Source: Leucoraja erinacea (lineage: Eukaryota). From it: a DNA stretch of 64,000 nt. The notes below the pieces were generated by a model. The model saw only the letters and a program-made list of their open reading frames with translations, was not told the origin of the DNA and did not search any database. A program made the translations under genes and the position numbers. The stretch lies in assembly GCF_028641065.1 (NCBI RefSeq), contig NW_026575418.1, forward strand, positions 62,001 to 126,000. The letters run 5' to 3'. This document shows positions 18,134-24,700 of this stretch, one piece after another (position 1 is the stretch's first letter; the number at the start of each line of letters is the position of its first letter).

Positions 18134-21100
18134 GTGGGAGGGCAGAAAGGGAACGAGGGATACAAAAAGAGAGAGGGAAGAGGAAGAACAGGGAGAGACA
18201 GAGAGAGAGAGGATAGAAGAAGAGAAAGAGGGAGAGGGAGAGAAAGAAAGAGAGTGAGGGGGAGGAGGTAGGAGAGAGGGGGATGAGAAAGACTGGGAAG
18301 AGGGGGGAGTGAGAGGGATGCAGAGAATGGTGGGAAGAGAGGGGGAGACAAGATGCATGTGTGTGGCTGTGTACAGGGAGACAGTGGGTGATAGTGGGAG
18401 ACAGAAGAGAGAGAGAGAGAGGGGAGATGAGAAAGACTGGGAAGAGGGGGGAGTGAGAGGGACACAGATAATGGAGAGAGAGAGCGAGATGAAAGGGAGA
18501 TAGTGTAGGAGAGGAAGGAAGGGAGAGAGAGAAGCAGAGAAAGAAAAACAGAAGGAAGGCGAGGGAGACAGATAGGGAGAGAAACGGAAGGAAGAAGATA
18601 GGGAGAAAAAAGGGGGAGAGAGAGAGTGGGAGTGGCAGCAGAGAATGGAGGAGATAGGGAGACATATGGTGAGGGATTTCAGACTAACTACAGTGAGAGG
18701 GGAGATTATCAGATGAGATTATCACGGCACTGTTTATATCAAAGATCCTATAGCAGAGCTCTGCTATAGGATCTTTGGTTGATAGACCTCAGCGGCCCTT
18801 GTGTGTGAAAGAGAGAGAGCGAGAGAGAAACAGAATGTGGGTGTGTGAGAGAGAGTGAAACAAGGGAAGAGAGAAAGCAGAGAATGAGGAAAAGTGAGAG
18901 TGGAGAAAGGGAGAGGGAAAATGAAGGCGAGGGACTGCACTAACTGCAGTAAGAAGGTAGGAGGGGGGCAAGGGAGGGGGAGGAGGGGGGGAGGGGTAGA
19001 GGGAGGGGGAGAGGGGAGGGAGCGGGGAGGGAGGAGGAGAGGGAGAGGGAGGGGAAGAGGGAGGGAGGGGAAGAGAGGGAGGGGAGAGGGAGGGGGGAGG
19101 AGGGAGAGGGAGGGGAGAGAGAGAAGAGGAAGAGAAGGGGAGGGGGGAGAGAGGGAGCGGGGAGAGGGGGAGGAGGGTAGGGAAGAGAATGGAAGGGGGG
19201 GGGGGAATGCGGGAGAGGGAGGGGGTAGGGGAAGAGAATGGAAGGGGGGGGCGGAATGCGGTGGGTAGGGGGGAGAGAAGGTAAGGGGGAGGGAGGGAAG
19301 GGGAGGGGGAGAGGGGGGAGAGGGAGGGGAAAAGGGGGAGAATGAAGGGGGTGAGAGAGGGGGAGAAGGCAGGGGGTGAGAGAGAGAGGGGGGTTGAGAG
19401 AGAGGGGGGAGGGAGAGAGAGAGAGAGGTGCAGTGAGACGCGGAGAGGGAAAGATGGGAGGGAGAGAGAGCGAGAGGTGTGGGGGGAGGGAGAGAGATGG
19501 GAGCTGCGGGTGGGAGAGATCGGGGAGGGTGAGTGGTGGAGGGGGGAAGAGAGAGAGAGAGAGAGAGAGCGAGAGCGAGAGCGAGCGAGAGAGAGAGAGA
19601 GAGAGAGAGAGAGGGGAGCCGGGGAGAGACGGTGGGGGTAGAGGGTGCTTGGAATGAGGGAGAGGGAAGAGAGAGAGTGTGCAAAGATGGAAGGGCAGGG
19701 AAGGAGAGAGAGACAGATGCATCGGTGGGGTTAGAGGGGAGTTGGGGTGAGACGGCAACACCTCTCCGCGTAGAGTTTCACTCTTTATTTTTCTCTGTCC
19801 CATCACGCCGTCTCCCCGCCCTCTCCTCTCACCCTCGCTGCCTGATGAGCAAGAGGGAGTTTCTGCACACTAACGCCCGCTGGTCCAAGGGGAGGAGGGA
19901 GGGAGAGGCTCCACGCTCTCTTGTTCATTCACTCTCCCCGGGCGATGTATGTTCGTGCGCGCTTACGTCTGGAGGAGTCGGCTCTTTGCTGGGACTTTCA
20001 CATTTTCTCTCCCTCTTTCTCTCCCTGCCCCCGAGGAACAAAAAGAGGAAGTCCCTGTCCCACTTCACGACCGCCCGCTGAGCCAAAGGCGAGGAGGGAG
20101 GAGCTTCACTCTTTTTATACCCAAATAGATTTAATTCCACTTTACTTCGTAATCAAAGCACGTTGTGGAAGGATCAATACTGCCGAATACCAGTTACAAA
20201 CATCAATCAATCAATGGTCAAATGGGAAAGGACGATGGACTGGACCCCCGTGGCGACCAGCGGTCACTGAAGGTCCCCGTGGGCAACGTGTGTTCCCTCT
20301 CCAGTGAGCAATAGACCAAACAAGGGACAGACAGTCGCCTCGGGCATAACCGTCCACAGCCTGCTGCCTGGACCCAGTGAATGGCCCAGGAGCAAACCAA
20401 CAGGGAATATCCTCCCCCCTAGCGACCGTGACCAAATATCAAGAGTGACACGACAAAAGTTCCCAATACAAATCAAAATCTTAATGGAGTTACTGTAAAT
20501 AACACATTCGCAGTTAAAACAATTACTGTTACAAGCACTAGGAAGATCAAAACTGCCAGTTAGCAATTTGCAAACATTCGGATGTGTCGGGCTGAAATGC
20601 AGCCAAAACATGAGGAGTAGTGTCCCTAAGGTGTTCTCCAGAAACCAGTCAAAGTTGCTGTTCCAAAGGCTTTGATCCCAGTCTGGTTGAAGCACTTCAA
20701 CTTCATAGCCTTTCCAAGAAACACTGTCCCATAGAAACATAGAAAATATGTGCAGGAGGAGGCCATTCGGGCCTTCGAGCCAGCACCGCCATTCATTGTG
20801 ATCATGGCTGATCATTCCCTATCAATAACCCGTGCCTGCCTTCTGCCCATATCCCTTGATTCTACTAGCCCCTAGAGCTCTGTCTAACTCTCTCTTAAAT
20901 CCAACCAGTGAAATCCAACCAGGGAATTCCATATATTCACAACTCTCTGGGTGAAAAAGTTTTTTCTCACCTCAGTCTTAAATGACCTCGCCTTTATTCG
21001 AAGACTGGCCCCTGGTTCTGGACTCACCCAACATTGGGAACATTTTTCCTGCATCTAGCCTGTCCAGTCCTTTTATAGTTTTATATGTTTCTATAAGATC

Positions 21101-21745: not shown

Positions 21746-24700
21746 TTTATCTGTCTCTCCTATTTACTGTGTAGGTTCTGCCCATGTTACTGCTCCCAAA
21801 ATGCATCACTTCACATTTCTCTGTATTAAATTCCGTCAAAAAATCCTCACCCCATCTGTCCAACCGATCAAGATCTTGCTGCAATTTTTGACAACCATTC
21901 TCACTATCTACAATACCACCAACTTTTGTGACATCTGCAAACTCTGCCATGTACGTTGAGATCCACACAGGCCTCCAGTCCGAAAATAAATCTTCCCCCA
22001 TCACCATCTGCTTCCTTGCATGGAGCCAATTTTCCATCCATTCAGCTGTCTCTTCTTGATTGGGACCTAATCTTCGTGAGCGGCCTACCTTGTCAAATGC
22101 CCGACTAAAATCATTTGGCCACATCCTCAAAAGAACACAATCAGATTTGAGACACATCCTCCCACACTCAGAACCTTGTTGACTATTGCTAACCAGCCCT
22201 TGTCCATCAAAGTGGTACATCCTATCCCTCAGAATACTCTCCAGTAACTTTCCAACCACAGATGTTAAGCTCACTGCCGTGTAGTTCCCAGTCTTTTCCT
22301 TGCAGCCCATCTGGAATAGAGGCAACATTTGCCACCCTCCAGTCATCCAGCACCTTCCCTCTAATTAATGACCACGCATAAATCTACGTGTGGGTTCCTG
22401 TACTTTCCTGTTTAGTTTCCCACTGCATCCTCACATAGATCTGATCTGGCCCGGGAGAGTTGTCTATCTCCACACTCGTCAGGACCTTCGGCACCTCTGC
22501 AACCCTAACACCGACTGCTGTCAGGACAGCTCAGTATCCCCATCCTCCTGCGTTTCTCCACGCTAAAGATATACTCATTGGGGACCTTTCCCATCTCCTA
22601 TGGCTCCACACAGATTGACTACTTTTCCCGTTTTCTCCCTGGTTACCCTTTTCCCCTTTATGTGCTTATAACATCTCTTGGGACTATCCTTATTGCTATG
22701 TGCCACACGTATTTCCCGTACCCTTTTTGAGCTTCTCATTGATACACTTAACCCCTGCTGCCTATACCTGTCCCAAGCCTCCTACTCTTGACCAAAGCCT
22801 CAATTTCCCTCGTCATCCAGGCTTGCCTGCATTGCCCTTCCCTCTAACAGGGCAGAGCAAGAAGACGTCCCTGTACCACTACCACTGGGCCAAGGGGAGG
22901 GGGGAGGAAGGGAGCTTCACTGTGTGTGTGCGTGCATGCGCGTGTGTGTGTGAGAGAGAGAGAGATGGAGAAAGGGAGACAGTACAGTGCAGCTTCACTC
23001 TGAGAGAAGGGAGAGGAAGAGAGAGGACGAAGGAGAGAGAGAGTAGGTCGGTGTGGGGTTGGGGGGAAGGTCTGGACGGTGCGGAGGGGGCTTCAGTCTG
23101 GGTGTGTGTGAGACCCCGGGGAGGAGTGGGCGGCAGGACTGTGCGGAGGGAACTCCACTATAATGTTTAAGAGGGAACTGGATGGGAGAATCGAAGGGCA
23201 CAAAAAAGCTGGAGAAAAATCAGCGGGGGCAGCAGCACTATAAGCGAAGGAAATAGGCAACGTTTCGGGCCGAAACCGCGCTGGTGTTCTTCAGACATAG
23301 ATGCTGCTGCACCCGCTGAGTTTCTCCAGCTTTTTTGTGTAACCTCCACTATAATGTATGTTGGTGCGCGCTTACAACAAACGGTGGCGCAGCTCTGTGG
23401 AGGGAGTTTCACTCTTTTGTTTCTCCTCTCTCTCTCTCTCTCCCCATAGCTGTCTGATGACCAAGAAGAAGTTCCTGTACCACTTCACCAATGCCCGCTG
23501 GGCAAAGGGGAGGCATGAAACATATGTGTGTTACGTGTTGGAGCGCCGGGACAGCCCCGTCTCCCGCTCGCTGGACTTCGGCTACTTGCGGAACATTCCG
23601 GGCTCCCACGCCGAGGAGCTGCTCCTCCGGATACTGTCCGGCTGGCCCCTCGACCCCCTCAGGCCCCTGTGCCTCACCCTCTACGCCTCCTGGAGTCCCT
23701 GCGCCCAATGCTCCCACCGCCTCGCCACCTTCCTCCAGCGATGGCCCAACCTCACTCTCCGTCTATTTGTGGCCAGACTCTACTACTGCCAGGGCTCAGG
23801 ACCCCACCCCGGGGGGCTACGGAGACTGAGGGTGGCGGGGGTCAGTCTGGGGGTCATGGGCTACACAGGTACGGGGAAGGCACGGGGGGGAAGGAGGAAG
23901 ATGGGTGCAGAGAGAGCGGAGGAACGGAGGGGATGTGGATGGTAGAGAGAGGGAGGGGTACAGATGTATGGGTAAGGGGGGTGGGGTGAGGGAGGGAAGT
24001 GTGGATGGAAGGAAAGGAGGGAGTGAGGTACGAGGAGGAAGAGGGGTACACAAGTAGGCGGGACTGGGGGAGGGCGGAGAGGGGGGTGAGAGGGATGGGT
24101 AAGGGGGAGGGAGAGGGGGGCGGTAACGGTAACGAGAGGGGAGCGGTTGTGAGTGGGAGGGGGAGTACACAGGTATGGGGAGGGGAAGGGCAGAAGGGGG
24201 GAGGGGAGGGGAAGGGCAGAAGGGGGGGGGGGGAGGGAAGGGGAGAAGGGGGGAGGGGAAGGGCAGAAGAGGGAAGGGGGTGAGTGGGGAGGAAGGGTGG
24301 GAAAAGAGAAGAGAGGGGCTGGGGTCACAGGCACGCGGAAGAGGAGAGGAGGGAAGGGGGGGTGTAGGGCTGCGAGGGCGAGGGAAGGGGAAGATCAGGA
24401 GAGACGAGGAGGGGAGGGGGAAGTGAAGAGAGCAGGAGAAGGGGAGAGGTAAGATGAGGATGGAGGAGCGATGAGAGGGGAGAGGAAAGGAAAGGGGGGA
24501 TGGGAGGAAGTGTGAAGGTGAGGGGAGGTGTTGAAGAGTGAGGAGAGGGGTGGGGATGGCTGAGGTTACGAGAGGGAGAATGCAGGGGAGAAGGAGGGAA
24601 TAGTATACCGAGGGGAAGGGATAGGGGCAGTAGGAAGGGGTTGAGTGTGGAGGAGAGAGGGCAGTGAAGGGAATGGAGGAGGAGGGATGCGGAAAGCGCA

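Follow-up and report, generated by a model that had tools for sequence, protein, structure and literature searches.

Truncated copies of an exon junction inside the AICDA gene of the skate Leucoraja erinacea: probable relics of an old partial tandem duplication

Decoy 3′ splice sites and decoy exons are intronic pseudo-splice sites that hold back splicing. Tandem exon duplication, on the other side, is known to leave copies of exons in introns (Kondrashov and Koonin 2001, as cited in an excerpt of PMC2592719), and for the gene treated here an excerpt of PMC3628980 places silencers in intron 1 of mouse Aicda. We analysed a stretch of 64 kb (the window) that represents the AICDA (AID) locus of Leucoraja erinacea, and describe three truncated copies of the junction between intron 1 and exon 2, called echoes 1 to 3 in the following, which lie within the predicted intron 1 of the same gene. 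The finding is real, old and lineage-specific, and it is of an ordinary kind, an exon junction having been partly duplicated in tandem and the copies having decayed. The echoes are most probably neutral relics of an old tandem duplication that took place inside intron 1 of skate AICDA.

As in tandem exon duplication, an exon and its flanking intron are copied locally and on the same strand into a neighbouring intron of the same gene. Unlike in that process, the skate copies comprise only the first 64 nucleotides (nt) of the exon, have no donor site and are decayed, and they cannot be mutually exclusive exons. The echoes also resemble the minisatellite or unequal-crossover arrays of G-rich introns, with head-to-tail units of ~200 bp, one junction, a recurring G-rich core and GA/TG flanks. 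They are unlike such arrays in that the unit captured a piece of a coding exon together with a complete 3′ splice-site module, and in that the copies are few, old and diverged. The silencer region of mammalian Aicda described in the excerpt of PMC3628980 shares both gene and intron with the skate echoes, but these derive from an exon junction and not from known regulatory blocks.

The parental exon is located at 23450-23868 on the plus strand (residues CLMTKKKF...GVMGYT, with HAE and PCxxC motifs). It encodes a 139-residue AID/APOBEC deaminase core that matched the Pfam AID/APOBEC families, human AID is its best solved relative (E 6e-46), and the product shares 100% identity with NCBI protein P0001, 'single-stranded DNA cytosine deaminase [Leucoraja erinacea]'. 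The exon corresponds to mammalian AID exons 2 and 3 in fused form. With the real junction (23330-23530) as blastn query against the window, plus-strand matches were obtained at 19811-19895 (echo 1, 75% identity, E 2e-12), 19945-20094 (echo 2, 72% identity, E 8e-20) and 22855-22924 (echo 3, 69% identity, E 1e-5), and nothing comparable was found in the window beyond these three. A profile built from the copies gave nhmmer E values of 4e-42, 4e-47 and 1e-16 for echoes 1, 2 and 3, respectively, and the three truncated junction copies proposed in the original prediction are therefore real.

Echo 1 (~19749-19911, plus strand) contains a branch-point-like block (TTTCACT) and a pyrimidine tract, and its exon-like part occupies 19838-19895; the acceptor AG has become CG, and tblastn with AID proteins reads it as CLMSKREFLH--TNARWSKGRRE, with the exon-like part covering the residues up to KGR. 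Echo 2 (~19901-20116, plus strand) is a full unit of ~200 bp in which CTCCAC, ATGTATGTTCGTGCGCGCTTAC, GGGACTTTCACA, a pyrimidine tract and GAG/G (a slash marks the exon boundary) follow each other before the exon-like part at 20037-20093. It is read by tblastn as KKRKSLSHFTTAR-stop-AKGEE, where a TGA stop at 20079-20081 replaces the Trp codon. Echo 3 (22835-22921, plus strand) has a short pyrimidine tract, CAG/G (with the G at 22850) and an exon-like part at 22851-22900 (QSKKTSLYHY---HWAKGR, extended by tblastn to QSKKTSLYHY---HWAKGRGE); it keeps only the last ~70 nt, its upstream part being replaced by transposon-derived sequence. The conceptual translations of the echoes follow AID residues 1-21 only, and the exon-like parts contain the in-frame indels of 6 and 9 nt that had been noted before. 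Echoes 1 and 2 are arranged head to tail, 198 bp from start to start in Leucoraja. As had been claimed, all three copies stop at one shared point, after AAGGGGAGG (K-G-R), and run on into a purine run of the form GGGAGG..GCTYCAC, which reads GAGGAGGGAGGGAGAGGCTCCAC in echo 1, GAGGAGGGAGGAGCTTCACT in echo 2 and GGGGGGAGGAAGGGAGCTTCACT in echo 3.

The extent of the duplicated unit was taken from a multiple alignment that included the copies of the thorny skate, Amblyraja radiata. The unit measures ~185-205 bp, begins with a start motif ~190 bp upstream of the acceptor, and consists of CAGGAC..TGCGGAGGGAGCTCCAC (23139-23160 in the window), ATGTATGTTGGTGCGCGCTTAC, GGAGGGAGTTTCACT, which forms a branch-point-like block ~45 nt before the acceptor, the pyrimidine tract with AG, and the first 64 nt of the exon. 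Its parental version is interrupted in Leucoraja: the start (GGAGGAGTGGGCGGCAGGACTGTGCGGAGGGAACTCCACTATAATGT, 23121-23166, plus strand, nhmmer E 2e-7) is separated by an inserted foldback element from the remainder at 23344-23513 (plus strand), which holds ATGTATGTTGGTGCGCGCTTAC, GGAGGGAGTTTCACT, the pyrimidine tract, the AG at 23448-23449 and the 64 exon nt up to AAGGGGAGG. An NF-kB-like or IRF-like reading of GGGACTTTCAC and GAGTTTCACT was set aside, the block being more simply the branch-point region. Echo 2 holds every part of the unit, and so does echo 1 in Amblyraja, Leucoraja having lost 46 bp there. Accordingly placed in both of these are the upstream segments ATGTATGTT..GCGCGCTTAC and CAGGAC..GGAGGGAGCTCCAC or CAGGAC..GGAGGGAGCTYCAC. 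Alignable sequence extends from the unit-start motif over ATGTATGTT..GCGCGCTTAC and the TTTCACT block to the pyrimidine tract, which means that flanking intron was copied along with the exon part. Because the copies carry this flanking intron sequence, the echoes are genomic in origin and do not stem from messenger RNA (mRNA).

These boundaries modify the original prediction in several respects. Where it has the copies reproduce the acceptor region, the acceptor AG is in fact lost in echo 1, and the copies reach further upstream. The idea of a ~115-bp unit amplified by GGAGG microhomology was right in placing the breakpoint within a GGAGG-type purine run, and underestimated the length of the unit. 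The intronic GGAGGGAGTTTCACT at 23399 had been named as counterpart of the junction; the partner of the exonic GGGGAGG is instead GGAGGGA(A/G)CTCCAC at the unit start (23145-23160). Pieces of the unit start also occur by themselves. A stray junction motif (GAGGCTTCACTGTGTGTG) with a GA-rich tract at 21590-21750 (plus strand) resembles the sequence just after echo 3, and two copies of the unit-start motif (..GTGCAGCTTCACT and ..GGTGCGGAGGGGGCTTCAGT) at 22974-23099 (plus strand) weakly match positions 11-46 of the nhmmer profile (E 0.2 and 0.6), with a stronger match in Amblyraja (E 0.02). The unit-start motif thus recurs without an exon-like part at 21590, 22974 and 23071, and these copies suggest that a short G-rich, minisatellite-like repeat pre-existed or was co-amplified.

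All three echoes are found at orthologous places in Amblyraja radiata, for which we used a locus of 23.6 kb (L001, from the AID orthologue P0039) that is collinear with positions 13457-37103 of the window. With the true Amblyraja junction as blastn query, the orthologues were matched at L001 6643-6765 (echo 1, full unit 6564-6775), 6815-6962 (echo 2, full unit 6773-6973) and 9542-9590 (echo 3, orthologue 9519-9600). Since an independent assembly of a second genus holds the same copies, the echoes are not assembly artefacts. Part of 19740-20420, which spans echoes 1 and 2 with ~300 bp of flank, is moreover present in contigs of 20 runs from 9 studies, which carry five coded organism labels. Repeats and low-complexity sequence abound here, and this might invite the explanation that the echoes are such an artefact, or a genome-wide interspersed repeat that resembles the AID junction by chance. 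Against the latter, the exon-like part matches an N-terminal AID peptide that is conserved from sharks to mammals, and neither the window nor L001 yielded a copy of the unit beyond this intron, while genuine interspersed repeats of this region reach at least 14 copies. With this evidence, either version of the explanation is barely credible.

The comparison between the two skates also gives an indication of age. In a maximum-likelihood tree the four Leucoraja/Amblyraja pairs were each recovered with 99-100% support, with stems of 0.15-0.27 and tips of 0.00-0.05. Jukes-Cantor distances were 0.36-0.55 between paralogues versus 0.04-0.07 between orthologues, so that the copies differ ~10 times more from each other than from their counterparts in the other genus. 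Judging from the orthologous positions, the tree and these distances, all duplications predate the split of the two Rajidae genera and are several-fold older than it, and the copies have not been homogenised later. Echoes 1 and 2, which are those retaining the codon, have the skate Thr of HFTN, where sharks and stingrays have Lys (HFKN). Echoes 1 and 3 have Ser at position 4, as do Hypanus and Mobula, and the present skate exon has Thr. Because the Thr codon is shared by echoes 1 and 2, the duplication is placed on the skate lineage, after the change from Lys to Thr and before the Leucoraja/Amblyraja split.

The original prediction had also considered that the echoes diverged while coding, as relics of a collapsed AID-like gene family. 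A naive codon-level comparison of the echoes with the present exon appears to agree, since it gave a synonymous excess (p 0.02) with an omega, i.e. the ratio of non-synonymous to synonymous substitution rates (dN/dS), of 0.46. The excess was gone once each change was polarised by means of the other echoes: the pooled echo lineages carry 5 synonymous and 20 non-synonymous changes (omega 0.9, p 0.5), and the lineage of the real exon carries 3 synonymous changes and 1 non-synonymous change (omega ~0.08). Among the synonymous differences, the real exon changed from TGC to TGT in Leucoraja alone (Amblyraja has TGC), and AAC to AAT as well as GCC to GCA are located on the real exon's lineage. The naive excess arises because a dead copy differs from its living parent in part through changes of the parent, which selection has filtered. 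Read from the aligned copies, the substitution pattern of the echoes is neutral and shows no coding constraint.

The reading frame gives a similar picture. The codon of the echo 2 stop is TGA in Leucoraja and TGG in Amblyraja, and the spacing of echoes 1 and 2 is 198 nt in the former and 196 nt in the latter, owing to a 2-bp indel. An open frame of 79 codons running from echo 1 through echo 2 in Leucoraja was rejected as a candidate, being broken in Amblyraja by this indel. The two in-frame indels of 6 and 9 nt could be taken as a further sign of a coding past; two such indels have a chance probability of ~1 in 9, and the 9-nt one falls together with a duplicated TACCAC. The 64 kb of the window and the 23.6 kb of Amblyraja contain no echo of any further portion of the AID gene, be it the remainder of exon 2/3, exon 4 or exon 5. 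Neither the deaminase core (HxE, PCxxC) nor remnants of it were found in the echoes, and there was no other AID-like fragment in the window or L001. All copies end at the same codon and in the same junction, and they take in ~110-190 nt of intron, which is typical of genomic tandem copies. Together with the stop codon, the unconserved frame and the placement of the synonymous changes on the lineage of the functional exon, this makes it very unlikely that the echoes are relics of a gene family, or of duplicated coding exons whose divergence, prior to collapse, was under selection.

Further claims concerned splicing. We compared the echoes between Leucoraja and Amblyraja and found substitution identities of 98.0% (echo 1), 95.9% (echo 2) and 95.6% (echo 3), with 94.5-96.4% in adjacent non-echo intron and transposon sequence and 97.9% in exon 2/3. 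Against equally long intron windows the divergence of echoes 1, 2 and 3 falls at the 11th, 47th and 60th percentile, respectively, and at the 25th when pooled. Conservation of the echoes is at background level. Of the splice signals, the acceptor AG has been lost from echo 1 as described above, echo 2 has TTTCACA and GAG/G behind a 95% pyrimidine tract, and echo 3 has CAG/G behind an 80% pyrimidine tract.

The acceptor-like sites of echoes 2 and 3 are what speaks for alternative N-terminal micro-exons between exon 1 and exon 2, as had been suggested. No AG/GTR or GGTRAG donor was found in 19840-20200 or 22850-23450, however, and since no consensus donor follows any echo, micro-exons are unlikely on the basis of these signals. 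The echo 2 stop, the end of all copies at codon 21 and the NCBI models argue in the same direction; in both skates these models start at the Met within exon 2 and include no echo exon. Taking all of this together, we give the micro-exons next to no credence. No RNA run is recorded as containing the exons of the AID locus. The runs labelled X1 and X2 contained 0.55-0.67 of the words of a purely intronic stretch, and because of these intronic words they appear to be DNA and not RNA. We infer that the echoes are absent from mRNA.

A different role would be that of decoy 3′ splice sites, where the tandem-duplicated copies bind early parts of the spliceosome in intron 1 and slow or divert the productive splicing of a mutator gene whose level must stay low. 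Echoes 2 and 3 resemble known decoys in that a branch-point-like sequence, a pyrimidine tract and an AG are preserved deep within the intron, and both echoes are retained in Amblyraja. The low divergence of the echo 1 unit, at the 11th percentile, and the silencers of mouse Aicda intron 1 in the excerpt of PMC3628980 might be cited in its favour as well. Unlike in decoys, the skate echoes show no conservation beyond background: retention at 5% divergence is the neutral expectation, and no significant constraint was detected. Echo 1 is without AG, and the GAG of echo 2 is a poor acceptor. We regard decoy function as unlikely. The more specific proposal, in which the echo 2 and echo 3 modules as decoy acceptors would help to keep the mutagenic AID low in skates, as a splicing brake made from copies of the gene's own junction, would be a shade less likely again. 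Should the echoes prove to be decoys, AID expression would be restrained in a new manner, but so far nothing in these data supports this.

We favour the explanation of the echoes as neutral relics of a tandem duplication, and the following history would account for them. A segment of ~200 bp, from the G-rich CAGGAC..TGCGGAGGGAGCTCCAC through the TTTCACT block, the pyrimidine tract and the acceptor to 64 nt into exon 2, might have been duplicated by a single illegitimate join of the exonic GGGGAGG (Lys-Gly-Arg codons) with the intronic GGAGGGAG. Illegitimate recombination, microhomology-mediated template switching or unequal exchange in this purine-rich, repeat-prone intron could each have produced the join. 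Unequal crossing-over between units may then have amplified the array, which is how tandem arrays ordinarily behave, and because each such exchange copies the same junction, a single shared breakpoint would not require several independent events. Interspersed repeats, a fragment of a long interspersed element (LINE) and growth of GA/TG microsatellites would later have increased the distances between the copies and severed echo 3 from its upstream part, and the copies would have drifted without coding or splicing constraint. We infer both the microhomology mechanism and this order of events.

Some observations weigh against this explanation in its simple form. The ancestor used for polarising was derived from the paralogues themselves. 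When three shared states were moved to a common echo stem, a hand count gave 7 synonymous and 21 non-synonymous changes, which is still near the neutral share. The search for further copies of the unit covered the 64-kb window and the 23.6 kb of L001. A binomial test against the overall background found marginally fewer differences in the echoes (16 of 457 positions, p 0.04); we give this value little weight because rapidly evolving GA tracts form part of that background and no effect appears in the window-based test. Use of echoes 2 and 3 as decoy acceptors is possible in view of their splice signals. Finally, the history had more than one clean event, since there are motif copies without exon-like parts and there is homology upstream of echo 1.

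A later separation of the copies by retroelements, as had been proposed, is reasonable, given the mobile elements between echoes 2 and 3. At 20726-21309 there is a copy of an abundant interspersed repeat of ~600 bp, which has at least 14 copies in the window and is shared with Amblyraja at the orthologous place. A reverse-transcriptase (LINE-like) fragment follows on the minus strand at 21750-22346 (Pfam RVT_1, E 2.2e-6), with a score of 27.9 bits that is just under the cut-off of 29.6. Most of the sequence between echoes 2 and 3 is shared with Amblyraja. A segment of ~520 bp in the LINE-like fragment (21875-22394) is without an aligned Amblyraja counterpart and represents a lineage-specific insertion or deletion. 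The foldback (palindromic) element that splits the parental unit is 177 bp long (23167-23343) and flanked by a 14-bp target duplication (CTCCACTATAATGT, at 23153-23166 and 23344-23357). It is specific to Leucoraja, being absent at Amblyraja L001 9866-9879; its arms match L001 12301-12381 on both strands, and related copies were seen near 25832 and at 15403-15465 and 34778-34859.

A fourth, very degenerate echo is possibly present at 13508-13631 (plus strand), 4.5 kb upstream of the putative exon 1. Its collinear resemblance to the echo unit is weak (nhmmer E 4e-4), although its score was reached by only 1 of 500 segment shuffles with the true unit and by 0 of 500 with echo 2. The segment is single-copy and 98% conserved in Amblyraja, where the orthologue has no nhmmer score. 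It could be a fourth relic, a promoter or a chance resemblance. A canonical TATAAATAG box is located at 13543 within it.

The structure of the skate gene itself was derived as follows. By tblastn with the annotated protein, the fused exon 2/3 is matched at 23457-23867 on the plus strand, the match beginning at the annotated Met (23457), exon 4 at 24958-25074 and exon 5 at 27047-27100. In sharks and stingrays the N-terminus of AID is MDS/CLM. The putative coding end of exon 1 in Leucoraja (ATGGAGAG/gt) lies at 18126-18133 on the plus strand, where the only upstream plus-strand match to ATGGANAG/GT is located, at 18126. It would yield M-E-S/CLMTKKK with the same split-codon phase as the shark and ray sequence, and 82 of 83 positions of 18051-18133 are identical in Amblyraja. 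This likely coding end of exon 1 is unannotated in both skate genomes, and because of the sole upstream ATGGANAG/GT, the matching phase and the identity with Amblyraja, intron 1 is predicted to extend from 18134 to 23449.

Purine content is 86% over 18134-19734 and 83% over 23869-24956, with a window average of 51%. These purine tracts of introns 1 and 2 are kilobase-long, have more than 50% G on the coding strand and change fastest between the two skates (87-92% identity, with many indels). An Rfam search of 18300-27200 gave no match. In other cartilaginous fishes, the partial model of the great white shark (Carcharodon) has 137 residues within only 412 bp, which suggests a fusion of exons 2 and 3 in sharks too. 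In the AID isoforms X1 and X2 of Hypanus sabinus (P0059, P0099) the PLDEIDDF..LGL tail of the last exon, a region that holds the nuclear export signal in mammals, is swapped for an unrelated tail of 49 residues, which could result from alternative 3′ splicing or read-through.

For the study of such loci the echoes carry a caution, as a spurious signal of purifying selection can arise when a dead copy is set against the living exon, which contributes mainly synonymous changes. They can also mislead exon finders and splice-site prediction, and this in a gene for which neither skate genome has an annotated first exon. For the skates themselves, the echoes are molecular fossils that keep an older N-terminus of skate AID, with the stingray-like Ser at position 4.

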